Assembly: GCF_037042905.1 (NCBI RefSeq)
Contig: NC_087245.1
Coordinates: 29,574,001-29,638,000, forward strand
Origin: Lytechinus pictus
Taxonomy: Eukaryota
Direction: 5' to 3'
Length of the DNA stretch: 64,000 nt
Made by a program: the position numbers and the translations under genes. Below, piece after piece: positions 5,871 through 63,110 of this stretch; positions within the stretch are counted from its first letter, which is position 1, and every line of letters begins with the position of its first letter. Under the pieces are notes generated by a model. The model was not told where the DNA came from, ran no database searches, and saw only the letters and a list, made by a program, of their open reading frames with translations.

Positions 5871-7105
5871 CCCCCCCCCCATCCCTCCCCCATTTCTATT
5901 CTATGAAATATTGATGCCTTCTTGATTTTTTTTCCTATCATGAGGAAATAATAAATTTATGAGCAGCGAAATTGTATCACATTTCAAAGTGAAGTTCTGA
6001 CACAAGTGTGTGCACTAAAGCAGGATATATGTTTGGCACCAATTATAATCCTCAACATATGACAATTATTTCTCACTTCTCAGGCTTTGAAATAGGAGGG
6101 ACAGTCCTTGCCATTCATTTGGTGACAAGCATTGTCTGAATAGCAGGGAATAATTTTCCTGGTATCGCATCGCAATTAGCTCCATATTCCTTCATGACTG
6201 CTATATTACATGTAGATACAAAGTTTCTTTTGTAAAGCAAGTTTTATCTATGAATTTACAGAACATAGTTAAAAACTTTTCTCTTACAACCAAAAATATG
6301 AATCAAACTAAAGAAGTAAAATTATACCATGGAAGAGTAAGATCAGCTTGACAGAATCATGGCAGAGCCAGGCACATGTATGCTCTTTGCAGTTTTTAGA
6401 GATCTTGCTTGATATGATATTAATACAGGTTTTGTGGCTGATGAATCTGTTCAAATTAGTATTATAAACACATCTTATTTTTAAAGATGGCTGATATGAC
6501 GATGGTTTCAGGATACAAATTGAAGTGAATAGTTAACTCCGATTGAGATGATGATTAAGTTGTTTTTCAAGAGATGCAGGTCTAACATTAACCATGTAAC
6601 ATTGCAAATGTATCAAAGAGTGGGTACTGTAACCGTGGAAAGTGGAAACCTTAATTGAGATTGGCTGCTGAGCACTGCTAACAAGGTAATACAATAATGG
6701 CAAAGTTACTATAGTTTTGTAACTCCTGCTGAAACAGGTCCCGGATGTATAGGCCTAGATATCAATGACACTCAAATTTCATAACCTTGGCATCAAAGTA
6801 ATTTTCATTGGAATGCTAGCAGAAAAAGAAAATCGAATCCTACAACTACAAATTTCCTTTTTAATATGACTTTCTACTTCTTGCAACATACAAGAGTGTA
6901 TACTATGATTCAAATCTGCTTTTACCAAGTTGATAAGTTTCAAAGCAAAACATGATTTATGTGTAAGATTATCAGTGTATATAAAGTGTGTAGACTGATT
7001 CTTGAATGAATCAGAAGATTCATATTTGCTGTGAGGTCACTCCTTTCTAAACATTTGCTCAAATTTTATAAATGTATTACGTTCTTCCAAAGCATCCAGG
7101 GTATC

Positions 7106-7268
7106 CTGGGGAGCGTTTCATGAAAGGACTTGTCGGACGTTTTATCCGACAAGTCCCATTTTATCCGACAGTTACCATAGTTACAGTATCTCTCAGCCAA
7201 TCAACATCAGAGAAAGATGTCAGATCTGACAACTTGTCGGATGAAAATGTTGATGAAACACTCCCCAG
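7106..7268. mobile_element. Short TIR element (163 bp), no evident TSD
   Basis: TIR ctggggagcgtttcat / atgaaacactccccag, with internal ttgtcgga/tccgacaa inverted motifs. Confidence 0.8.
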
Positions 7269-7418
7269 AACTACACAAGTTTCCCAGAATTTAACTCTAC
7301 TGCCACAATGGAGTTGACCTCTACTCAGAAACTGGGAAATAATAACTCGGTACCTTGGTTCTGACACCCTCACAAAACAAGATGATGCATCTTGCATTGT
7401 ACAAGAACCCCCCCCCCC

Positions 7419-7452
<34 letters not shown>

Positions 7453-7597
7453 TTTTTCCTTGAAAATCTGAAAAAACATTTTGTATATAATCTGCATGAG
7501 CTGATCTGCTCACCACCCCACCCCATTCCTTCAAAAATCAAATCAATAAAATGTCCATATAAAGAGTTTTCATACCCACTCAATTGCAGAAAAAAAC

Positions 7598-8080
7598 CTA
7601 GTATTTTCTGATAAGGAATTCTACTTACATCGGAAATATCAGATATTGTTTAATTGTTATATATTTTTTAAACATATTTATGTTAATATTGTTCCCTCCA
7701 GATTGGGCTACACTGTTAATGAAAGAATACTAAATAATTACTCAAATAGAAGCCTTCAGACCGAGTGGATAATACAAGAACTTGTTCAGGCCTCAAAATA
7801 TGAACCAGAACCAAAGTTTTGATGGAGTACACGTAGCAACCTAAATGGCCTACAAGGGCCAAGCGTACACACTGGATTGGACAAATTTCCATAAGTTGCT
7901 TTCACACTACAAGAAAACCCACAACTTTGGACAAATGCCTGATAAAATTTTCGCAATTTTGAAAATTATTATAATAACTCGCAGGATTTTCTTTTTCCAG
8001 GATATAGACTCACTTGAAAACTGAGAAACCTGGTATTCTTTGATTGATAAAAAAGTCTACCACTATCAGAGAATACCAGG
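7598..8080. mobile_element. Degenerate members of the ttcagaccg Harbinger-like MITE family
   Basis: Segments ttcagaccg, tttcacact..aa and gtattttctgat..g..atcag match the elements at 27514, 46570 and 50284. Confidence 0.45.
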
Positions 8081-8795
8081 CCCCAACATATGAGAAGTCA
8101 CGACAAACAAACTCAATTGTGATTGATCTGAAATTGCTTATAGGGCTGAGTCAAAACGTTTCAAACACTGTTCAAATGACTGTTAAAAGCAAAAACATTT
8201 ACTAATTTGGCCAGATAGATTTATAGATCTAGGGCCATGGATTTAAAGATCTATGCAAAATAAGAAATATAAGCAACTTTTGGTGAAGGTTTTTTTTACA
8301 TCATAAAACGATCTTTCAGAGTCAAGGAAGAGGTGAATATTTTTCATTTTCTTGATAGTTTTCAACTAAATCTGAGTATGGAAAATAGATGGCAATTTCA
8401 TGGATTTAAAGATGCAAAATATAAAATTTAGCACCTTTTGTGGGGAAGGTTCTCTTTTTTTACCCTCTCTGGTTAACAAACCGCCTGTTTATCAATTGCG
8501 TTTAAACATTTTTCAAAATAAACGTGATGACTCGGGCCTAATTAATTTAAGAGATATGAACTTCATCAATCCCACATTGATTTTTGTTTGAATCTATCGC
8601 AACTCTCTACAACACGGTGCCCTGGTATCCCCAAAGTGAAGATCCCTGCCAGTTATCAGATACTTAAATTTCAAAATTACGAGGCCATTTCCAGGATTTA
8701 TTCAAGAATACCTTCAGGTACAGGCTTTAAATATATACAAGAGCTGGCTCATGGCCGTGCCGATAGGAATGCATAGATCATAATGGAATACTCAC

Positions 8796-8912
8796 CAATT
8801 TATTCTGGCCACAACATAGTGAAAACGAGGGATGCACTCAGCTTCCCCGATTATACAACAGGACTCCGGACTCCACTCACGGCAATCTGGGGTTATGGAA
8901 AAGAATCTAGGA
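8796..8912 (-). other. Candidate exon (117 nt; alternative acceptors give 111 or 91 nt)
   Basis: Minus strand acceptors ttcctcag| (AG at 8913-8914), cctag| and ccccag|. Donor TG|GTGAGTAT at 8795. One open frame (PRFFSITPDCREWSPESCCIIGEAECIPRFHYVVARINW), but no recognisable protein. Confidence 0.45.
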
Positions 8913-8914
8913 CT

Positions 8915-9647
8915 GAGGAAAAAGAAGTGTGGGATGGAGACAAGAAGGGGGATGGGAGAGGAGGGGGTTGGAAGAGACAAGGGGAGGAATATCGGAGGCA
9001 AGGGCAAAGGATCGATGGGAGACGTATTGGTGAAAAGGAATAGAAGATGAGGTACAGGACAGGAAATACAAAGAGAGAGAGAGGAAATGTGAGATGGGGA
9101 ATAGGAGGCAGTAGAAGATGGGATGAAGAAACAAGGTGATGATGAGGATGGGAGGGGGGCAAGACGAATAAGGATGGACAGATGAACAAATGGAAAAGAC
9201 AGAGGATGAAAAAATATGGTGATGGGTGAGAAAAGAACAATTAGGACATGAGGAAAGGAAAGATGATAGGATAGGAGAAGGTGGGAAAGAGATGCCAATG
9301 GAAGGGAGGAAGGAACATGGGAAGAAATGAGAAAAATAGTAGTGGCAATAGGATGGAAGAATTGGAAAAACAAATTTAAAAAGAGGAAAGAGACAGGGGG
9401 TGGGTAATGGAGGGTGAAGAATAGCAATGTCGAAGGGAATAACAAAAAAAAAGAAAAGAAAAATTGAAGAGTTTGCAAAGGAATTTTAGATGGAAAGAGT
9501 GGGGGCAGTTATTATGTAAAGTGTGGGGGTTTGGGGGTATTTTGTTGGTTAGGTGGGATTAGTTTGGAGGGTTAAAGAAAGGTAAAAGAAAGAAGGGAAG
9601 CAAAAAACACGAAATAGATTAATATCAAGATCCAATTGCATATTACA
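8915..9647 (-). repeat. Non-periodic purine-rich (+) / pyrimidine-rich (-) tract with no AG on the minus strand
   Basis: No CT dinucleotide on the plus strand between 8915 and 9647. This tract produces the spurious F/S/L/P-rich ORFs in the track. Confidence 0.9.
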
Positions 9648-10065
9648 CTAAAACATGATAAAGAATCCCAAGCTTCGACCCTTGATGAATTCAATACCAT
9701 TCCTGGCCTTGACATCTAACTGCTGCAGCAACACTCAAGTCAAGAGCTAGCTGCATACACTACTGGCACAGGGCAAACAAATCCCAAATAACTCACAATG
9801 TAGGAGGCCTTGCAAAGTCAGATTCCCCCTCAAAGTCCAAAACATACTATATATTACCCTGCAATCATGCAATATAACAAGAACTCTAGTGCACATAATC
9901 ATGATTATAAATGATTGTTCCACTTGCAGCACTGGGCTGTATCATTTCAACACACAGATAAACCCAAAGATAAAAAAGATTAATAGATATGAGCATGGAA
10001 ATGGATATGTAGCGTCAAGCACAGCACTATATACTACCAGCTGAACAGCGAGAATATATGCTTAC

Positions 10066-10330
10066 AGTATATTCACAATATATCTTCCAAGTTGAAAACA
10101 TAGACTTGAGCTGAGAATTATTCCTTGAGAGTCCACACTGCTTGCAGTGAAACGGTAACAACAGATTAGGCAGGATAATTCCACATTAAGAGCATGTTCT
10201 ATAGAAATGCAGTACTGAAGAAGTGCTGTCCGTGAAGGAGTCAATTATTTTTTTAATAGGGACCGAAAAGAACAAGCCACCTCCACAGCAATAGTGTGTT
10301 GTAAATGATAGGCAATGTATACACACAACA
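10066..10330 (-). other. Candidate upstream (first or 5'UTR) exon; 5' boundary uncertain
   Basis: Donor ACT|GTAAGC at 10065. Short ATG frame MFSTWKIYCEYT (10101-10066). Unique, repeat-free sequence. Confidence 0.3.
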
Positions 10331-10820
10331 CGGCTGGGCTGAAGGAGCACGGTTTTCTGGCTGTGCTGGCTGAGCTGGGCTGGCAAACGCTCAATTCTAT
10401 GAACGCTTCCCCTATATGAGTGTACAGCACGGCGTAAACACAAAAAGAGCATAGCATAATGTCTGCTTATGCTGTGTGTGTTGGTGTGTGTGTGAGGAGG
10501 CGCTGTGTGTTCTTATGTTGGCCATAGTTCGGGGGCAATAGAACTCCCTGTGTTAGATTTATTTAGTGTGTGTGCCCTGTATTTTCTTGGCCTACTCAAT
10601 ATGGGGTAGCCAGCCAGCCAGCCAGCCATGCACGCTTCGATAAGCTTGCTCGGGTTCTGCTGCAATGCCAATCCTCACTTTGCGGGCACAACAGTTCTGT
10701 TTCGAACCTTGTACATCTGTAATGTCATGGATTCTGGTTCCCCCATAAACGTGTTTGAACATGGGGAGCCAGCAAGAGAGAGATAAAAACATTCTTGGCC
10801 GTTTCACTCACTCACCCTGT
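10330..10820. promoter_or_regulatory. GC-elevated unique island, possible promoter or enhancer
   Basis: Repeat-free with higher GC and CpG, (GT)n and (GCCA)n runs, and a Fox-type GTAAACA at 10434. Adjacent to the candidate exon. Confidence 0.3.
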
Positions 10821-11033
10821 CCCTGGTAATGAGTAATGGGTCAACCGGTTCTCAGTGTTTCTAATTAGAAACATCCACAAAATAAATCTAGAATGACACA
10901 GACATCACACCATAAACTTAGTTATACTATAAATTCAATAGCAGTTGGTCAATAATTTGAACAGTAAGTCATAAATCTTGCCTGTCTGTCAGGATCAAAC
11001 CAGAGAATATCTAATATGGTCTCAAAATTCTAA

Positions 11034-11346
11034 GGCCCATATTCTGAAGTCGGGTTTAACTTAAACTCTGGTTTTAAAGTGTGGTTTAAGTATGGATAGC
11101 CAATTGTTACATAAATCACTAACAGTAGAGATATCATATTTCAGCTCATTTGGCTCTTAAATCATTCATAATTGTCTAGGAAGTATAAATAGATGATTGT
11201 CTTCACTATCGATGAATCAGGAAAGAGCACAGTAAACATAAGAAACATACAACTTTAAATACAAATGTTGACACTTTTGGCTTCCCATAATTTTAGCAGA
11301 GAGTTTGACTATGGTCTAAGTTAAACCTGACTTTAGAATATGGGCC
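11034..11346. mobile_element. TIR MITE (ggcccatattctgaag family)
   Basis: TIR of about 33 bp: ggcccatattctgaagtcgggtttaacttaaac / gtctaagttaaacctgactttagaatatgggcc. Degenerate copies at 42108 and about 47510-47760. Confidence 0.85.
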
Positions 11347-11380
11347 AAAGGGTCTCTATCTGTGTTTCTGCAACTTACAG

Positions 11381-11975
11381 AGGTCCAGGCTAAAAATAAT
11401 TATACCTAAATTAGATAGAGAATAATTAATCAAGCAAAACACAAAAAAACTATCAAAATCTGATAACAAATTACAAACTTTTTAATGTCAAAATTTAGCA
11501 AGTTTGTGAAAACAGTTACCGGTATGTGCATGCATGTCTTCATGAATATTCATTAGATTGGCTGATGATGTCTAGTCCCCACTTTTCATTATCTTTTGTT
11601 ATTACATGAAATCGTAATCATTTCATATTTTCATACAGGTGTGTATGAGCTCCGCTGTAACAAAGTAGTCATCTAATTTTGTTCTTTCTTATTTCTTGGA
11701 CAAAATTTGAATTAGCATAATTTCATCTAATAAAATGCAAAAAAAAAGTAAAAGGGGATTTAACATCATCAGCTTGCTCATTGCATATATTCAAGAATAC
11801 CTGCACAGAAACCAAATTAGTGCAAAACTTCAACATTTCATAACTTTGTTATTCCTTGTCTGATTTTGATGAAATTTTATTGATAAAGTGTTTGTTTTGT
11901 TGTTGGTTTTTTGTATGAATTTTTCTTTATCTGTTCAAATCATATTATTTTCAGCCTGGAGATCTGGACCACTTA
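11381..11975. mobile_element. Older Kolobok/T2-type MITE related to 4425-5016
   Basis: Ends gtccaggctaaaaataat / attattttcagcctgga. Internal catcaaaat, aaaacagtta and ataacttt motifs are collinear with the 4425 element. Confidence 0.6.
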
Positions 11976-14458
11976 AAAACAAATTTCCCCAAAACAAAAT
12001 CACATATTTCTCGAAATTCATTGGTATTCCTTGGAATTTTCCATTTTTTTACCGTTTAAAATAAATTCGGACAATGATGCAGCTAGCCGGAAGTAGGCCT
12101 ATAAATGCATAAATTGTTGACCAGAAATAAAGCAATTCAAGACCTCTTTCATTGTCCAATCAGTTCCTAAACTTGTGATAAAATTAATAATGCAAGCATT
12201 AAAGCGCAAGATAATATTGGGCAACATATATTGAGGCAATTATTCTAGAAATATGAAACTTTTTACTTTCAAATATCATTTGGAATTTTCGAATTTCCCT
12301 TAATTACCTGGTATTTTAATCTTCCTGAAAATTACAGAGAAAAGGTCGAGATTTCCCAGTATTTGGGTTATTTCCTGGACAGTAGAGACATTGAACTCTG
12401 TTGAACAAAATGTGAAATAGTTGAAATATATTTTAATGATTCATTGTTCATCGCACCTTTCTGGGAAAATAAAAATGTTTGAGGGCAGAAGAGAACTGAA
12501 CGACATCTTACAGAATATGGGTTTATCAAAAATAAATGAATATAGCATGATATCTCGTAGATGCCTGTAACTAGGAGATACAAGTAGCATGCTTCATGTA
12601 CATTTTCTTTTATTCACACAAAGAAATTAGTTTTTGTAATATATTTCAAAGACCTCCATCCGAGTTATATTTAAGTATAATGCAAGTGCAAGGCAAGTCA
12701 AACGCAAGTCAGGGATGCATGTTAACTGGTTAGTTGTGAATCTTCTTGTATTCTTTGAATATTTGTTGTGTAATCCCATTCACAGAATACCTACTCACTA
12801 GCTAATCCTATTCAAATATCAATGATTAGTGCTTACACCTATTGCAAAACACCTTTATTGTGCTATACAGAGAGTAGGAGATGATCTCTTAATAAACTCA
12901 TAATACAAGGGTGAAGAAGATATTTTTTAATATTTTGTCACAGATTAAAAGCATCAGAAACAATCACTATTTAATATTGTCAATATTACTTGGAAAACCA
13001 AGATTCTGTCTGATTATTTTTTTTCCCAATAAATGCAATTCCATAATAAACAAGATTCTTAAAAACTACATTAAAAATTGTGGTAAAAAATGAAAGGAAT
13101 AGATTCTGAAATAATGGAAATTGACACTATATTGTTTTTACAGTGCGCCAGCCCAGCAGCACTGCTGGCCAAAATCAGAATATGAACAAATGGACAACCT
13201 CCGAGTCATACTCTTAATAATGTCACAAAATATTTCTACTATTATCTCTGACAAAATTTGCATGATAATTATTACTCTAAAGTGAAGTGCCATGCTGCCC
13301 ATTCACTTCACTAAAAAAAACACTAAAGCTAATGAAAAACAATCATGAGCCTGCAAGACCTCATAATTTTATGAGTTTTAATATTTGCACTTGCCCTGAA
13401 TGTAGCTAAAATAAATAATTACTTGAACATGAATGCACTACAACTATTTTTGGCACAAGGTCTACATTAATGATCAAGATTCTGCCTATTCCTTCGATAA
13501 TTAATCATAACTTTTTCTAGGAGGAACAACCATAGTAGACAATTCTTATTCTTGATATTGTGAGCAACTGTCAACCATTCTTCACTATAGGCTAATGTGC
13601 CAATAGAATACTGGCAACAAGACACAAAAAGGGGCGCCTTTGAGCATTATCATCTCAACCAAAAGGAAAAGTGGCGAACAAAAAGGAAGATATAGGTCGG
13701 CTCCACGAAGCTTAACCAAAGCACGTTCAAAAAAGTTAGTGAACCTGTGTAAGTTTGCCAGTATGACAATCAACACAGACTGTACAAAAGAGAAGCAAAC
13801 TTGGCAACAGTTTGATATTGGCAACGCTGAACAGATATACAATTGACAAATGCAGACAATGATTATGAATAATATTCAAAATTTCAGCTCTTTCATCTTC
13901 CTTTCTTTATGCGGCTTCAATCTGCCTGCAACACTAGCTTGCGGTTGAAAAGAATATGTTTTTGGAGTATTTGCAAAGCCTAAATCTTCTTGATCAGATT
14001 TTAAAATAAAGACCTCCTATTTCAATGAAGTGAGTAATTGACTAGCGTGAACAGTGAGCAGGGATGTGAGAGACTGACTATTGGTCCTCTGGTTGCTTAC
14101 CTACAAGCATTCATGCTTTCTTGGCACCAGGGTTAGCCTTTACACAAGTCTCTGCGTCTGCTATAACGTGTATATCAGAAACAGAGCGACTAATAAAACA
14201 AGACTACGGTAATCACTAAAAACCCTAGTGAACCGAGAAAAACCAAGGAGCCTGGCTCGGATGTCTTATGTAACAATCACAGTGAGCCAGACTGGTTTGG
14301 GTGATTCGCCGTTTTTTCGCCGTTTTTTCTCCCTTTTTTCTCCCTTTTTCCCAACAGAAAAACGGCTAGAAAACGGCTAAAAAACGGCGACAAAAAAAGT
14401 GTACCGACTATGGAAAGCTAACTGTATGCAACAATGATTTTTATCAGAATAAAATAGT

Positions 14459-16620: not shown

Positions 16621-16752
16621 ATGGCCCAGTCACATTTCCCTTACGGCGGGTCAAACACATCCGTTAAGACTTTTTTGTACCATCTAAACATTAATAAAAC
16701 GGCTGTTTTCGACTCGCCATACGCCGCGGTAGGGGAAATGTGACTGCAGCAT
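16621..16752. mobile_element. Small TIR MITE nested in the CMC element
   Basis: TIR cagtcacatttccc / gggaaatgtgactg. Confidence 0.7.
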
Positions 16753-16789
16753 CAGGAACATGAAAAGTGCCTTTCGCATTATCATGCGA

Positions 16790-17130
16790 GAGTGAAAGCA
16801 AGAAAAGAATGAAAGAAAGGAAGAAATATGGAATGACAGAAAGAATGAAAAGAGAAGAGGAGAGGAAGGGAACCAAAAAATATAAGGAAAGAAAGAAGAA
16901 AGGAAATAAAAGGAAAGTAAGAAAAGGAAGGAAGGGAAGAAAAAAAATGAACAGAGAGAGAGAAAGGATCAGGAAAGAAAGCTAGGAAAGATTTGAAATA
17001 AGATAGAACAAAAAAAAGCAAGCAGGAAGGATAGAAGAAAGGATGAAGAAAAAAGAAAGAAAAGAAAGAAAATGAACGAAAGAAAGCAATAAAGAAAGAA
17101 ATGAAGAAAGGATTAAAGAGGAAAAAAATT
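16790..17130. repeat. (AAAG/AAGG)n-like low-complexity tract
   Basis: Degenerate purine microsatellite. Source of the K/R/E-rich pseudo-ORF. Confidence 0.85.
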
Positions 17131-18449
17131 AACCTTCAAGCAAACAAAACAAATGTAATCATCTAACAAAAAATCTTACAGATATTTGTCTTTTTTATGA
17201 TATATTTAAAAATTGTTAGAAAACTAAAATGTTTTAGAAACAAATAAAATTTGAAGGTGAAACATTGTCAAACTTTAATAAAATGAACATCGCGGCATCA
17301 CACCATCTCTATCTCTATTTGTCTTGTCTTATTGTTATCGGTGCGAACACGAAAAAGACTCATTTTCACTCAAAACAAAAGCTGAAACAACTAGATCGAT
17401 CTAGTAATGAAAACTCGATAACTTGCTTCTACGACTACATCACCAAATCATTAATCTGAGGATCCATATATGTTTAAATTTCCTGCCGATTTTGTGATTA
17501 TTTTGTTGGAAAAACTGTTAATCATGTGAGATTGTTCACTTTGATTCAGAGTTTGCAAATCTCCTCCGATCATGCAAGCCTGCCACACACCACACAGGCA
17601 GGCAGGCCAAGCCACGTGCGGCAGCTGGTACATGTACACTGTATGCTAACTTTGCGTGTGTGTGTGTCTGTGTGTAGATCCCAGAAAATCACGGAAAATG
17701 ACTTGCAGTTTGAATTGATCTGAGTTATTTTTTAACTTTGTTTTTTTTCTCTCTCTCTCTTCTGTATTTTTGCGTGAAATATGGGAGAACTTTGTAAACT
17801 TTAAGCATAATTACTTAATAGCGATTTGCATGAAAAAAATTACGATACAATTTTGTAGATTACTTCCCTGACAACCTGCGTGCCAATATTCGGCGGGAGA
17901 AATTTTGCATTTTTTTAGTAAATAGGGCAAATTTAAGCTCTTTAACTACATTCGACTTTGAATGATTTATTGTTCTCCATCATAAAAGACCACAAATAGT
18001 AGAGGGGGATTTGATATTATGCCCCCCTTTCCAAAAAGTGAGGGACACGTCCCCCTCGGGTTCCCGCCCATGAAGAAGGGAAAATAAGAGTAAAGAATAA
18101 AGTATTCAAAGAAGTTTCAATCCAATTCAATTACATTTTATTTTCATCTGATTGACATTTTATCAAATTCCACATGAAATATAAAAAATGTTGAAATAAA
18201 ACAATTATATGTAAATAAGATTTATGAAAGAAGGCGTAACCCCCCCCCCCCCGAAAGTAAAATAAAAATTGTTTACATGAATGAAATGAGAATTATTATT
18301 AAATATTACCCATGAAAACTAGAGCTTATTTCCAAAAGGAGTTCTTCAGAAAATCTGAAGTTGGCAGAAAAATTGCAAATATATATTCTACGTCTTCTAG
18401 TCACTTTTTCTCAATGCATATCACACATTTTCACATTTCTTTTTGCCAT

Positions 18450-18840
18450 TTTATGCAATGCACTTCGTACTACCCATTCGCCCTTTTCTTTTTTTTCTAA
18501 CTTTTTTGCTGTTTCATGCTCTCACCTCTTACTACTCAGCTGCCCTTTTCTCTCCGTTGTCCCGCCACTTTCTCTCCCTTTCATGCAATGCACTCCCTGG
18601 GACCCATTCACAATTTCCTCTCCGTTTATGCACTGCACGCCTTATACCCATTCGCCCTTTTGTCTCCGTTTTCTCGCCCTTTTTTCTCCGTTTTATGCAA
18701 CGCGCGCCTTACTACCCATTCGCCCTTTTGTCTCCGTTTTCTCGCCCTTTTCTCTCCGTTTATTAGCCGTTTTCTTTCAGTATCTTCACTCCTCTAACAG
18801 GATCCTCGTCCTTATCATTCGCCGTTTTCTCGCCGTTTTC
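18450..18840 (+). repeat. Tandem subterminal repeats (about 60 bp) of the CMC element
   Basis: Recurring atgca..gc..ctta(c)tacccattcgccctttt(g)tctccgttttctcgccc. Confidence 0.7.
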
Positions 18841-20213
18841 ATGGGGAAATCAATAGCTCCGCTAATATTAAACAATCATGGCACTCCATAATAATTCAAG
18901 ATTTATGTAAGAAACCTAATGTAGCCGTTTTTTGGCCGTTTTTTCTCCAAAAATTCTCCCTTTCTTCGCCCTTTTCTAGCCGTTTTCAAAACGGCGAAAA
19001 AACTGCAACTTTGAATTTCCCATAGGTTATAACACACAAAACGGCGAAAAAAGGGCGAAAAAACTGCAGTGGCTCACTGTGAATAATTCCCACCTTGAAC
19101 CCTCTACCAGAGAGGTAGAAGCCAATTGGTGGAGGTATCACTCGCATCAATGAACCCGCAGTCAGAAGGGAATATACTGGTCTAATGACGTCACCAGCTT
19201 TGACAATGCGGATTGGCTCATCGGCATGCTCATGAATAATTCATACCTTCACGTCTCCTCCAGAATCCTATTGCGCGTTCACCAGGGTGTCACTAGTCGT
19301 GTCTAAGCCATTACTTCACAACGAATAAAGACAAATCACAAGGCCTTGTGAAAATGCTACAATCGGGTAAAATAACCACCAAAACCCTGAGTAGTAAGAC
19401 ATTTTCTCTTAAAATATACATATACATATATTCATATATAAATCAGAATAATGCTTACTGAGTCACAGAATCTGTGGAGAAAGAATAGGCCTATATTATA
19501 CAGCACAGCCTACCCCTAAACCGGATAAAATCATATGCAAGTTTCATAAATTTGCTTGGTCCAAATTTTTATAATTTACAAGTAGACTCTAGGCCTATTT
19601 AATAACAATTAACAGATATGCCTATTTACGAATATTGGAATACCATTGCATTAGGCACAATCAATCTCTTTCTTTTTTTAGGGGGTAGGGGCATTGCATA
19701 TCAGGAAAGTAAAAATGCAGAATTTCCTAACTGAAAATGCCCTCTTTATTCAGCAACTACTGCAAAAGTCATTTACTGTATGCCCAGATATGAATATGAC
19801 CCGAAATACTCAATGTACATGTACATGTTGAATTGCAAAGAAAACTTGCAGTTCCATACACTCTGGGGTTAATTTGAGATGCCAAAGCAAGGAAAACCTT
19901 ATGGAATGTACACAAAGGCTTACAACACCATGACCTCCCCCATCCATACTATGCAGGACTATGTACACAATCCTGCACAACAGCTGTTGTGGTGGCGAAA
20001 ACTAGGCTAACACTATTCAGATGACTGTAAAACCCCCTCCTGATACCCGCTAGTCTATGACCTGCGAGCGTTTTTATTTTCCCCTTTTTTTCAGGGGGGG
20101 GGGGGGGGGTCGTTGTTTTTTTCAAGATTGGGACCGAAGCATGAATTTGAAAACAGGGCTAATAGTGACCTACATGTAGTACAGCTGATCTCAAACTTGC
20201 TAGACATTCTACA

Positions 20214-20400: not shown

Positions 20401-21129
20401 CGGGGGGGGGGGGGTCACTCACCACATATTGTGCTACCCACGCGCGTCCACGCACTTAAAAAATGGACCCTAAATGGTGTAAACCCCACGCAAACCTGGT
20501 CCAACAAAAACACACCCTAAATGGCGCAAACAGGGTAAAAAATCTACCCTAAATGGCGTACACGAGTAAACAAATATACCCTAAATGGCGTAACCCCCGC
20601 ATAAAAAATATAGGCCTACCCTAAATGGCGTTACATTCCACCACTACAGACAGTGCCATACCAACATGGCCGTATGCAGGAGGCAGTTGCCCCCCCCAAA
20701 AAAAAAAAAAAAAAAAAATTGAAAACTTACATATTTTACTGGAAAAATTTCACAAAATTCACCAAAAGTATGCAAGAAATCTTTCAATTCCACTTTAAAG
20801 AGAGTAAAAGCGCCCCTATGACAAGCTTGGTCGCTTCGCTCCCTCGCTTTTGAGTTAAAAAAAAAAAACTTACGCGTGCTGGCCCCCAGCGAAAAATTTC
20901 TGTGTACAGCCATGCATGCCAATAATGTGTAATTGAATGTATACAGTATATAAATACAAGTTTAGTACCCTAAACGTCGAAAACAGCACTTGAAGCTGAA
21001 GAACACCTTCTTTTAGAAAAACGCAGACGAAGTTGAAGGGCTGAAAACAGACCCTTTTCGATGCTTTTTGTGGAAGCACGTGCGTCTTACATGATATGGC
21101 GAGTGACCTCCCCCCCCCCCCCCCCCCGG
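20401..21129. mobile_element. Poly-G/poly-C-ended MITE (MULE-like)
   Basis: Ends C(G)n-tcactc / gagtgac..(C)n-GG. TSD agtctcat at 20393-20400 and 21130-21137. Five internal accctaaatgg repeats. Confidence 0.85.
20665..20914. mobile_element. hAT-type MITE nested in the poly-G element
   Basis: TIR catggccgtatgcag / ctgtgtacagccatg. 8-bp TSD cataccaa / catgccaa. Confidence 0.8.
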
Positions 21130-27995: not shown

Positions 27996-28300
27996 TTATT
28001 GGTCTCTATGGTTTTTGTAAAGGTGTATGAGGTTTAATTAAGGACACAATTATACATGGACACAGTAAAATTAATAGCAGATCAACCATTCCAAGTTTTT
28101 ATAACATCTCTATAGCTATGATCTTTGTACTTCAAACCAACAATCTGTGTACTTTGGTAAACAAATTTTTATGATTTTAAAGTCAAATTTCCCTTTATCT
28201 CATCTGATGTAAATTACAAGCAATACTCGAATGACAGTTAAAGATAAATGCAGGTTGTGGTAATGATCTCTAAATGAGTTCAAACACAATCCAATATTAA

Positions 28301-28638
28301 CAGTGGCAGATCCAAGGGGGGGGGACACAGCCAGCCCGTGCCCCCCCCCCCCCCTTTGAGAGCCACAATCAAAATTTGTAATGTAGAAATACAGATTAAC
28401 CCAAGTATGCCCCCCCCCCTTTGAAAGTGAGAACCTTTTTTTTCTCCACAGACGAAATAACCTTAAATCTGAGGTGAAAAACTTTTTTTTTCTTTTCTTT
28501 TTTTTTTGCATGTAAAATTTTCTGCGGACGAAATGACCTTCAATTTAAGTGAAAACCTTTTTCTTTTTTTTTTGCTTGTCAAATTTTCAGCAGGAAAATG
28601 TGCCCCCCCCCCCTTTTGGAAAATCCTGAATCCCCCTG
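28301..28638. mobile_element. hAT-type MITE
   Basis: Ends cagtggcagatccaag / cctgaatccccctg. 8-bp TSD aatattaa / aaaattaa. Confidence 0.8.
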
Positions 28639-53865: not shown

Positions 53866-54417
53866 CAGTCAGTCCGCAAGCCCCTGTGTTAATGAGCAAA
53901 TGAGCAAGATTTATCAAGTTCTCTCATGGCTGAATTCATGTCCCTGCAAAATCTCGTGAATTGTGAGACTTTCTTTCTCAAAGAATTTAACCACTTTTTC
54001 CTTGAGTAATATTGATTATTTTTGTACCATGGGCAAGAATAAATGTTACTCTTTTATATTGGTCATTTCTTTTTTATGAAATATTTTGATAAATAAGTGA
54101 ATTTTTTACCTGAAAAGATGCATCAAACAGAATTTTCTTCCTCTGTTTTCACTTGCAAATTGTGCAACATTTTGTGTTTTAGGCACCAACATTATTTATA
54201 TTATCAGAAAGCTCAAACTCTATACTTTCTTACAATGTCACTCTTGATATGTGGCATCTCTTAGATGGGTCAGCAGCAGCGTGGCCAGTGAAAAAAATCA
54301 AATTATGCCAGAGAAGCAGCGAAATTATGCTAAATCACGAAAAATTATGCCAAACCGTTTTGGACCCTAGGATTTTCCACAGGGGGGGGCAAAACCGTCC
54401 GCCAAAAAAATTTGACA

Positions 54418-54452
<35 letters not shown>

Positions 54453-55435
54453 AAAAAAAGGTCTTCAATCACAAATAAAGGATTTCGTACCAGAAGATAA
54501 ATAATTGACAAGCAAAAAAAAAAAAAAAAAAAAAGGTCTTCAATCTTCAAATAGATCAAATATGCTAAATATGCTATTTTTATGCAAGATTCTTTGCTTA
54601 AAACAGCCTGATTATGCCCCAAATTATGCTGAAAGGGTCGAAATTATGCCAGAAAAAAAGTATAATTATGCCAGAATTATGCCGGCATAATGAATTATGC
54701 TGAAAGGGTCGAAATTATGCCAGAAAGCATAATTATGCCAGTTCTGGCAACGTTGGTCAGCAGCCAGCTTTTTCCATCAAGATGCAAGACGAGATTTCTG
54801 AAATTTCTGAGTAACATAAAATCCAGAGTTCTGATTGGCTGAATACTGTTTTCAAAACAAACAGGCGTGGGTAATTTGAAAAGATTACCACATGGTGAGT
54901 GTGACCTTGCAGAGGCCCCGTGTGGGGAACATCGGAATTTGCGTGGGTGTGTGGTCTCTATGACCAATCAGAGCGCAGTATTCTTGTTTTGGAGCTGCAA
55001 AATGTACTTGGCCTATGAAAAGCTGGCTGCTGACCCATCTAAAATACATCTTCTTATAAAAATTATATCATATTAAAGCTTAGATCTTCAGCTTTATCAT
55101 GATCTAAAAATCATTTGTGCCCAAACAGAAATTAAGTGTGAAAACAACAACTTTTGTTGCATGAAAAAAAATATTTTGTTTCATGTTTTAGATCAAAAGT
55201 TTTTCCTATATTACAACATTCTTTTAAAAATCCAAACACATGACCTGAAAGAATTATTCTTCTTCTTTACAAAGATACCAAAAACATGAAATTTGGTCAA
55301 TATTTAGAGCAGCAATGGCCGAATAAAAAGAGGTGTTTTGGTTCGCACCAAGCTCATTAACTATGCAAAAACCCTCTAGTCATGAATATCACTTGGATAA
55401 AAGAAGCTACTTTTTCAGGGCTTGCGGACTGACTG
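53866..55435. mobile_element. TIR element with a 4-bp TSD, superfamily unassigned
   Basis: TIR cagtcagtccgcaagccc / gggcttgcggactgactg. Flanks tacc at 53862-53865 and 55436-55439. Confidence 0.8.
54277..54755. mobile_element. hAT-type MITE with aattatgc repeats, nested
   Basis: TIR cagcgtggccag / ctggcaacgttg. Perfect 8-bp TSD gtcagcag at 54269-54276 and 54756-54763. Confidence 0.9.
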
Positions 55436-61846: not shown

Positions 61847-62426
61847 CCCGTGGGGGCCACTTCCATTGACGAGTGGATACCATGCGCGACCATGGGGTCT
61901 CGGAAAGCACCCTAAACACGTATTTTCCATATTCTGAAAATGCACCCCTTAACAAGTATTGGCGTCTGAAACCCTACCCTTAACAAGTATTGGGAACAAA
62001 ATGATACTCTTAATTGGCAAGTATTCCCTGAAATGAACCCCTAAACAAGTACAGGAATATTTTATTATTATGTCACGGGTCCTTCGGTCGTTGGTTTTAC
62101 CTTTACACATCATTTGGTTTAGTACGACCCCACCTTCCACACCTCGTGCAAATCGGACTCTAAACACGTAGTGTTGGGGCAAAAAGGACATCCTTTATAA
62201 AACATTTTAATTTTGTTTTATCATCCCCGCAAATTTGACCCTAAACACGTAACTTTCCTAGCGAAATAGATACCCTTTTTACATTATTTTTGTGTTTTTG
62301 AAACCCTTATCACGTTACGTACGTAACGTGCCCTGTCTTAAAAAAGACATCCTTTTTACATGTTTTTTGGGTCGCGCATGGTATCCACTCGTCAATGTAA
62401 GTGGCCCCCCCCCCCCCCCCCCCGGG
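61847..62426. mobile_element. Poly-G/poly-C-ended MITE, young
   Basis: Near-perfect inner TIR ggccacttccattgacgagtggataccatgcgcgacc. 8-bp TSD gtcatgcc at 61839-61846 and 62427-62434. Internal accc(c)t(a/t)aaca(c/a)gta repeats. Confidence 0.9.
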
Positions 62427-63110
62427 GTCATGCCACAAACATGATATCGCAAAACAAAATTGGTATATATATATATATCAAAACAAACTAGAGGTATACA
62501 TGAAAAAATTTGTTTTTGCAAAATAAAATAAAATAAATTTGAAACAATATTTAGATTTGTTTTTTGCCCCCCCCCCCCACCTCCAAAGGAAAAAAAATCA
62601 GATTCCAAATATATGAAGAGAAATTAGTGGTCCTATTTATGAAACTGTCCACTACAGTATTTAAATATCCATGAAAAAAAAAATCTTTTCATATTCGCCT
62701 GGAACAATTTGACAATCATAATACCGATTTCATATCTGTGCAATGGGTAGGCCTGGGACTTTCAGGTATTTTTGTCTTTGGGTACCCGTGGTAATTTTCG
62801 GGCGGGTACCCGAAAATCATGTCACATGAAATATTGACTGGTAGAAAAAACCCATAAGTGACATCATCCAGCCACTGCGTCGCAAGCCAATTTATGAATG
62901 AAAATATAGTATAAAGCATGCGCAGTGCAAGCCTCCCGTGCCCCACGCAGTATTCCATTGAAACAAGTCTGCAATACTCCGTCCCCTTGTACCAAAATAT
63001 ACCTAGAATTCCACTTTCCTATATTTCATATGAATTATGAAAGGTATTCTCGGAGGATCTGTTTTCTCACTGATACCACACAGGTAAGCCAATTTTGATT
63101 ACTTTTTGTT

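Follow-up and report, generated by a model that had tools for sequence, protein, structure and literature searches.

On the minus strand of a 64,000-nt stretch of the Lytechinus pictus genome (the window, which is the whole of the DNA analysed here), a 733-nt zone lacking the dinucleotide AG terminates exactly at the acceptor of a 117-nt exon that is supported by RNA reads. The reality of the exon, the strand of its RNA and the way in which the zone runs exactly up to the acceptor make a mechanistic tie between the pyrimidine-rich tract that fills this zone and the exon very likely. We lean, if modestly, toward the explanation that the branch point of this intron is distant (>100 nt) and that the tract acts as an oversized polypyrimidine tract, or AG-exclusion zone, for this real exon.

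A 117-nt exon and its transcript

The exon and its splice signals are the following (a slash marks a splice boundary).

8796 to 8912, minus strand: internal, non-coding exon of 117 nt, seen as a stranded island of depth in run X21 and covered also in X24, X1 and X20
8913 to 8914, minus strand: acceptor AG (ttctttttcctcAG/T), the first AG past the tract, in the context ttcctcAG
8790 to 8795, minus strand: donor GTGAGT (TTG/GTGAGTAT), with which the lower coverage edge agrees within ~5 nt
8908-8907 and 8888-8887, minus strand: two AGs inside the exon, possible alternative acceptors

RNA reads from four runs were mapped over positions 6300-12299: X21, a stranded, rRNA-depleted total RNA library with 151-nt reads; X24, which is unstranded and carries a second organism label; X1; and X20. 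In X21, the depth was 16-20 at the five listed positions from 8826 to 8884. The bin 8700-8899 contained 1978 letters (~104 nt x 19) and the bin 8900-9099 contained 264 letters (~13 nt x 20), the latter matching an exon start at 8912; together, the bin sums match an island at 8796-8912 to within ~5 nt. Given that this island (117 nt) is shorter than the reads (151 nt) and that its flanks are nearly devoid of reads, the reads must be spliced at both sides. In X20, the depth was 82.8 on the exon vs. 3.9 on a 1200-nt contig (8885-10095) that crosses the entire tract, which is the pattern expected for an exon and its pre-mRNA. Neither 8795/8796 nor 8912/8913 appeared among the joints listed, a list dominated by the high-copy repeats at 7105-7268 and 11034-11500, and we infer the splice junctions of the exon from depth.

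The splice signals cctcAG/ and /GTGAGT stand at the limits of the island on the minus strand only, and every X21 pair over the locus had its first mate on the plus strand. A first mate on the plus strand indicates, in most stranded libraries, RNA from the minus strand; the exon RNA is most likely of that origin. The exon is real, with limits 8796-8912. These results agree with the original prediction of a minus-strand exon that would follow the first AG (ttcctcag, 8913) and end at a donor 117 nt further on: the AG occupies 8914-8913, the donor starts at 8795 and the stranded X21 island fits 8796-8912. In X24, the depth falls from ~20 at 8855 to 5 at 8884, and there is almost none past 8900, so the third AG (8888-8887) may be the acceptor in this organism, or divergence may clip the reads.

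Upstream of the tract lies a second transcribed block.

10066 to 10698, minus strand: transcribed block E1, ending ATACT/GTAAGC; the X1 and X20 contigs both stop at 10066

E1 is single copy in the genome, and the X20 intron contig shares exactly 30 nt with it, the overlap that a branch in a 31-mer assembly graph would leave. E1 was covered in X1, X20 and X24 and was absent from X21, which does show the 117-nt exon, and in X20 the exon was far deeper than E1. On these data the main upstream exon lies elsewhere and E1 is at best an alternative; it is probably an alternative upstream or first exon, or the promoter region, of the same non-coding transcript. All ORFs of E1 stop before its donor and none crosses its 3' end. 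A search with three of these ORFs for encoding contigs that would reveal spliced transcripts found none on record. E1 also contains a (GGCT)n run near 10615-10635, and its G+C content is raised (0.45-0.51).

The exon had been proposed as open and frame-preserving. One of its three frames is indeed open, and the same frame stays open through the stop-poor pyrimidine tract. The exon differs by ~2.6% from each run, however, and all five variants found in the runs (8826, 8836, 8843, 8855 and 8884) are non-synonymous in the sole open frame: two change Cys to Arg (at CpG/TpG sites), one Glu to Asp and one Arg to His, and one, A>T at 8855, turns TGT into a TGA stop in 16 of 16 X21 reads. When the 38-aa frame was searched with phmmer against 1.84 billion representatives, no true homologue appeared; the only match, a bacterial repeat protein (GWSPEVV...GEATY repeats), was judged spurious. 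The 238-aa ORF of the tract, also judged spurious, had no match when searched for orthologous DNA. Pfam found no domain in 20 open stretches around the locus, Rfam had no match in the whole 64-kb window, and blastn and tblastn of the exon against this window returned the exon itself alone.

The stop in X21, the non-synonymous variants and the absence of a homologue rule out a protein-coding cassette exon. The suggestion that the exon is of the mutually exclusive type also fails, as the 64-kb window contains no similar partner exon. Taken together with the early ends of the ORFs and the absence of a Pfam domain, these results lead to an exon that looks like part of an lncRNA or an untranslated region (5'UTR), and it is without sign of constraint. 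At 8836 and 8884 the assembly reads TG on the minus strand and all four runs read CG; these are CpG-to-TpG changes private to the assembled haplotype.

The AG-free zone and its genomic background

The zone and the tract that it contains are as follows.

8915 to 9647, minus strand: AG-free zone of 733 nt, flanked by AG 9649-9648 and by the acceptor AG 8914-8913
8915 to 9612, minus strand: C/U-rich, non-periodic tract, ~80% pyrimidine (42% U, 38% C), single copy in the genome

The base counts of the zone (T309, C267, A119, G38) lead to 6.2 AG expected by composition vs. 0 observed, much as originally noted (no AG from 9647 to 8915, ~6 predicted). On the plus strand the zone corresponds to a CT gap of 735, and no gap of any of the 16 dinucleotides in the 64-kb window is longer; the runner-up AG or CT gap is 236. 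The 5' edge of the zone is sharp, with 27 AGs in the 418 nt that separate the GTAAGC donor (10065) from it. The zone begins 35 nt ahead of the C/U-rich tract, and the two are almost coextensive. TRF reports just three tiny tandem arrays in the tract, and a genome search found the tract once; these results rule out a tandem or repeat origin and confirm that the C/U-rich stretch is non-periodic, as had been stated.

Shuffling the zone inside 25-, 50-, 100- or 733-nt blocks, with local composition kept, gave a probability of 0.0005-0.0014 that no AG would occur. The other purine pairs were at the expected level in these shuffles (GA 5, AA 28, GG 2), so that AG in particular is missing and purine pairs as a whole are not in short supply. 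The direct contrast of AG with GA in the zone (0 vs. 5), which is the least assumption-laden comparison, gives a binomial p of 0.03. A 418-nt run without GA is also present inside the tract and is attributable to composition alone. Divided at -328 and -636, the zone has three parts in which 2.15 (next to the acceptor), 2.26 (in the middle) and 1.78 AGs (farthest upstream) are expected, and each of these sub-zones is unremarkable when considered singly. Across the tract, the X20 contig carries 42 substitutions and 25 gap letters, a difference of 3.5%, and its three listed deletions generate no AG. We computed that ~6% of random substitutions in the tract would generate an AG; ~1.5 AG would be expected even over the full contig.

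The background consisted of 200 kb of other genome sequence and the 64-kb window, 264 kb in all from a genome of 812 Mb. Two control tracts in the window are given here.

16714-17197, minus strand: control pyrimidine-rich tract, ~480-500 nt, AG 7 vs. 5.6 expected
18372-18869, plus strand: control pyrimidine-rich tract, ~480-500 nt, AG 6 vs. 8.7 expected

In the 20 other pyrimidine-rich tracts of the 264 kb, pooled, AG occurred 94 times vs. 95.5 expected and GA 106 times, and none of the 20 was AG-poor. A general AG poverty of pyrimidine-rich tracts in this genome is thus rejected. Four tracts of at least 450 nt per 264 kb extrapolate to ~12,000 genome-wide, so that about a dozen without AG would be expected by chance. 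The statistics are suggestive as to selective maintenance of the AG-free state (~0.001 per tract), but many tracts were scanned.

Long AG- or CT-free gaps in L020 and L014 were rejected as comparable cases because they are (GAT/GGT)n microsatellites. These are degenerate arrays of 450-560 nt (L020:7100-7660, L020:8050-8570 and L014:9340-9800). L020 carries two of them inside 1.5 kb, and each array is preceded by the same ~35-nt leader (…GGTACTAGTAGATAAGGTTTTGGTGATG…), which suggests a repeated element bearing the array.

Branch-point candidates and the explanations weighed

Two groups of candidate branch points were considered, with distances given from the acceptor. The first three motifs form the cluster at 9548 to 9576 and lie where the original prediction had placed them.

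9576-9571, minus strand: TTTAAC (A 9572, -659)
9563-9558, minus strand: ACTAAT (A 9559, -646)
9553-9548, minus strand: CCTAAC (A 9549, -636)
9240 to 9246, minus strand: TCCTAAT (A 9241, -328), with the U-rich run tgttcttttctc directly after it

The branch point usually lies in a window of 18-40 nt. The zone contains 21 yUnAy motifs, 15-18 of these from -118 to -604; the nearest is 118 nt upstream of the acceptor and none is closer, which argues for an unusually distant branch point. Judged by sequence, TCCTAAT at -328 and its U-rich run are the best candidate for a classical pair of branch point and pyrimidine tract within the zone. In the distal cluster, CCTAAC and ACTAAT match CURAY and are set back 75-100 nt from the 5' end of the zone; the sequence after the cluster is A/C-rich rather than U-rich. 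If AGs were purged only downstream of the branch point, the leftover chance would be ~0.17 for the distal cluster vs. ~0.018 for -328, so that the cluster would account for more of the AG-free length, an argument that presupposes selection. The X21 depth in the tract was zero, and no 'goes back' joint was there among the joints listed. The tract contains 24 UCUU and 4 CUCUCU motifs of the PTB type, and its UCUU density is not above that of the AG-containing tract at 16714-17197. We regard use of the predicted site in the 9549-9572 cluster, considered alone, as rather unlikely, and it is slightly less likely still that a branch point there, ~640-660 nt from the acceptor, goes together with the locus being one of a class of sea-urchin intronic AG-exclusion zones of 0.5-1 kb.

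On the explanation that we favour, the tract would be the 3' end of an intron in a non-coding-looking transcript (lncRNA or 5'UTR) of the minus strand. U2 would pair with a branch point at least 118 nt upstream, possibly at -328 or at -636 to -659, and the second splicing step would take the first downstream AG, 8914-8913, as the tract holds no other. Splicing constraint, rather than luck, would then be behind the missing AG. Given that the exon bears no sign of constraint, it is not obvious where selection strong enough to hold 733 nt free of AG would come from, and an AG newly arising in the tract would just extend a non-coding exon.

The same facts can be accounted for by chance followed by exonisation, which keeps the question of selection a serious contest, although we judge that reading somewhat unlikely overall. 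It holds that a neutral, purine-poor, low-complexity tract lacks AG by luck and that nothing maintains this state; a long pyrimidine run followed by AG makes a strong acceptor, GTGAGT happens to stand 117 nt on, and a passing non-coding transcript includes the piece between them, with the branch point perhaps at an A close to the acceptor that does not fit the consensus, or at any A of the tract. Consistent with this, the non-coding exon has changed at the pace of the sequence around it (the X20 intron contig is 3.5% different), the zone starts only 35 nt before a tract with which it almost coincides, the AG-vs-GA contrast reaches no further than p = 0.03 in a tract that also has a 418-nt GA-free run, and a 1-in-1000 tract is bound to appear when many windows are scanned. 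About half of the AG-free zones of at least 100 nt were estimated to be chance, with other purine dinucleotides as the control (Gooding et al. 2006, PMC1431707). Chance must nevertheless produce an event of P ~0.001 per tract while GA, AA and GG stay normal and 0 of 20 other tracts are AG-poor, and it must do so in a transcribed intron, in the sense orientation and right before a used exon, from which yUnAy is absent for 118 nt upstream.

Two further explanations are less probable. The original prediction combined a branch point at 9549-9572 (636-659 nt upstream) with a coding cassette that preserves the frame and is either PTB-regulated or mutually exclusive, and this combination is now quite unlikely. 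The fit of CCTAAC and ACTAAT to CURAY, their position 75-100 nt from the 5' end of the zone, as is usual for distant branch points, the greater AG-free length that a distal site would explain if AGs were purged only downstream of it (leftover ~0.17 vs. ~0.018) and the 24 UCUU and 4 CUCUCU motifs speak for it; but coding fails on the X21 stop, the non-synonymous variants and the missing homologue, the 64-kb window has no similar exon, the sequence past the cluster is rich in A and C and not in U, the UCUU density is no greater than in the AG-containing tract 16714-17197, and 640 nt exceeds the ~400-nt maximum cited (PMC1431707). Very improbable is a reading in which the tract has nothing to do with the exon and the island is no spliced exon of a transcript that crosses the tract, but comes, for example, from a separate small transcript or a mapping artefact. 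X21 has the exon and not E1, and the joints listed include none at 8795/8796 or 8912/8913, as such a reading would have it; against it, the island edges agree with AG/ and /GTGAGT within ~5 nt, 151-nt reads lie on a 117-nt island, the locus is single copy with reads that differ at 0-2 other positions, and the X20 contig 8885-10095 crosses the tract into the exon at a pre-mRNA-like depth.

Comparison with known distant branch points

In the survey of Gooding et al. 2006 (PMC1431707), AG-exclusion zones mark branch points up to ~400 nt upstream, and exons with such zones of 100-400 nt were described, the distant branch points usually lying near the 5' end of the zone. PTB exon 11, with its 381-nt zone and its branch point at -351, was validated there, alpha-tropomyosin exon 3 has its branch point at -175, and an AG inserted into an AG-exclusion zone becomes an acceptor (PMC1431707). 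The present locus is like those exons in having a long AG-free, pyrimidine-rich stretch that ends at a used acceptor, which is the first AG, and in having putative branch-point motifs near the 5' end of the zone, here followed by A/C-rich sequence. In terms of that class, at least 100 AG-free nt directly upstream of a used acceptor are matched by 733 nt, the use of the acceptor being read from stranded RNA depth, and AG depletion beyond base composition is matched by 0 AG vs. 6.2 expected (P ~0.001) with GA, AA and GG as expected, the direct AG-vs-GA contrast giving only p = 0.03. The locus differs in that its zone is about twice the longest zones cited (up to 400 nt), in that it belongs to an echinoderm and in that its exon is non-coding.

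Taggart et al. 2017 (PMC5378181) mapped vertebrate distal branch sites from lariat reads and showed them to be conserved, to bind U2AF2 and to occur together with skipped exons. Those sites lie more than 100 nt upstream, with extended AG-free 3' intron ends and conditionally skipped exons, and the AG-free 3' intron end is what the present locus has in common with them. They differ in being lariat-mapped and conserved from human to zebrafish, within conserved intron sequence, whereas here the branch point is predicted and the exon looks unconstrained.

Pyrimidine-rich intron sequence is known to be exonised, for example at the antisense poly-U tracts of Alu elements in primates, where the new exon is usually non-coding or minor. 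Under the reading by chance and exonisation, the present case would be like Alu exonisation in that a pre-existing pyrimidine run gives a strong acceptor and a chance downstream donor completes the exon. It is unlike it in that the tract is single-copy, low-complexity DNA and no transposon, and it is far longer than the Alu poly-U.

Use of a branch point several hundred nt upstream, if true, would extend the distance over which the first AG is known to be selected after branching to about twice its present value, and the locus would bring into the echinoderms a feature whose study has so far been in vertebrates. A branch point in the 9549-9572 cluster would mean that second-step AG scanning operates over far longer distances than documented. 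If chance and exonisation are the answer instead, the locus would show a long pyrimidine run creating a new non-coding exon, and it would be a warning against inferring selection from AG-free zones after many purine-poor tracts have been scanned. Under either reading, this is a concrete locus with RNA support.

The mapped region and the window also contained other repeated sequences. The high-copy repeats at 7105-7268 and 11034-11500 were covered to depths as high as tens of thousands, in all four runs and on both strands. They end sharply, and their flanks are unlike one another (loose ends at 7105-7108, 7266-7268 and 11034). Joints of the 'opposite strands' kind at 11103/11252-11255 suggest an inverted-repeat (MITE-like) element. 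Homopolymer pairs, poly-T/poly-G on the translated strand (F runs and then G runs in six-frame translations), recur at several sites, among them 7401-7459, ~2850-2900, 20700-20800, 28300-28500, 54400-54600 and 62400-62500, and are probably the tails of a dispersed repeat family.
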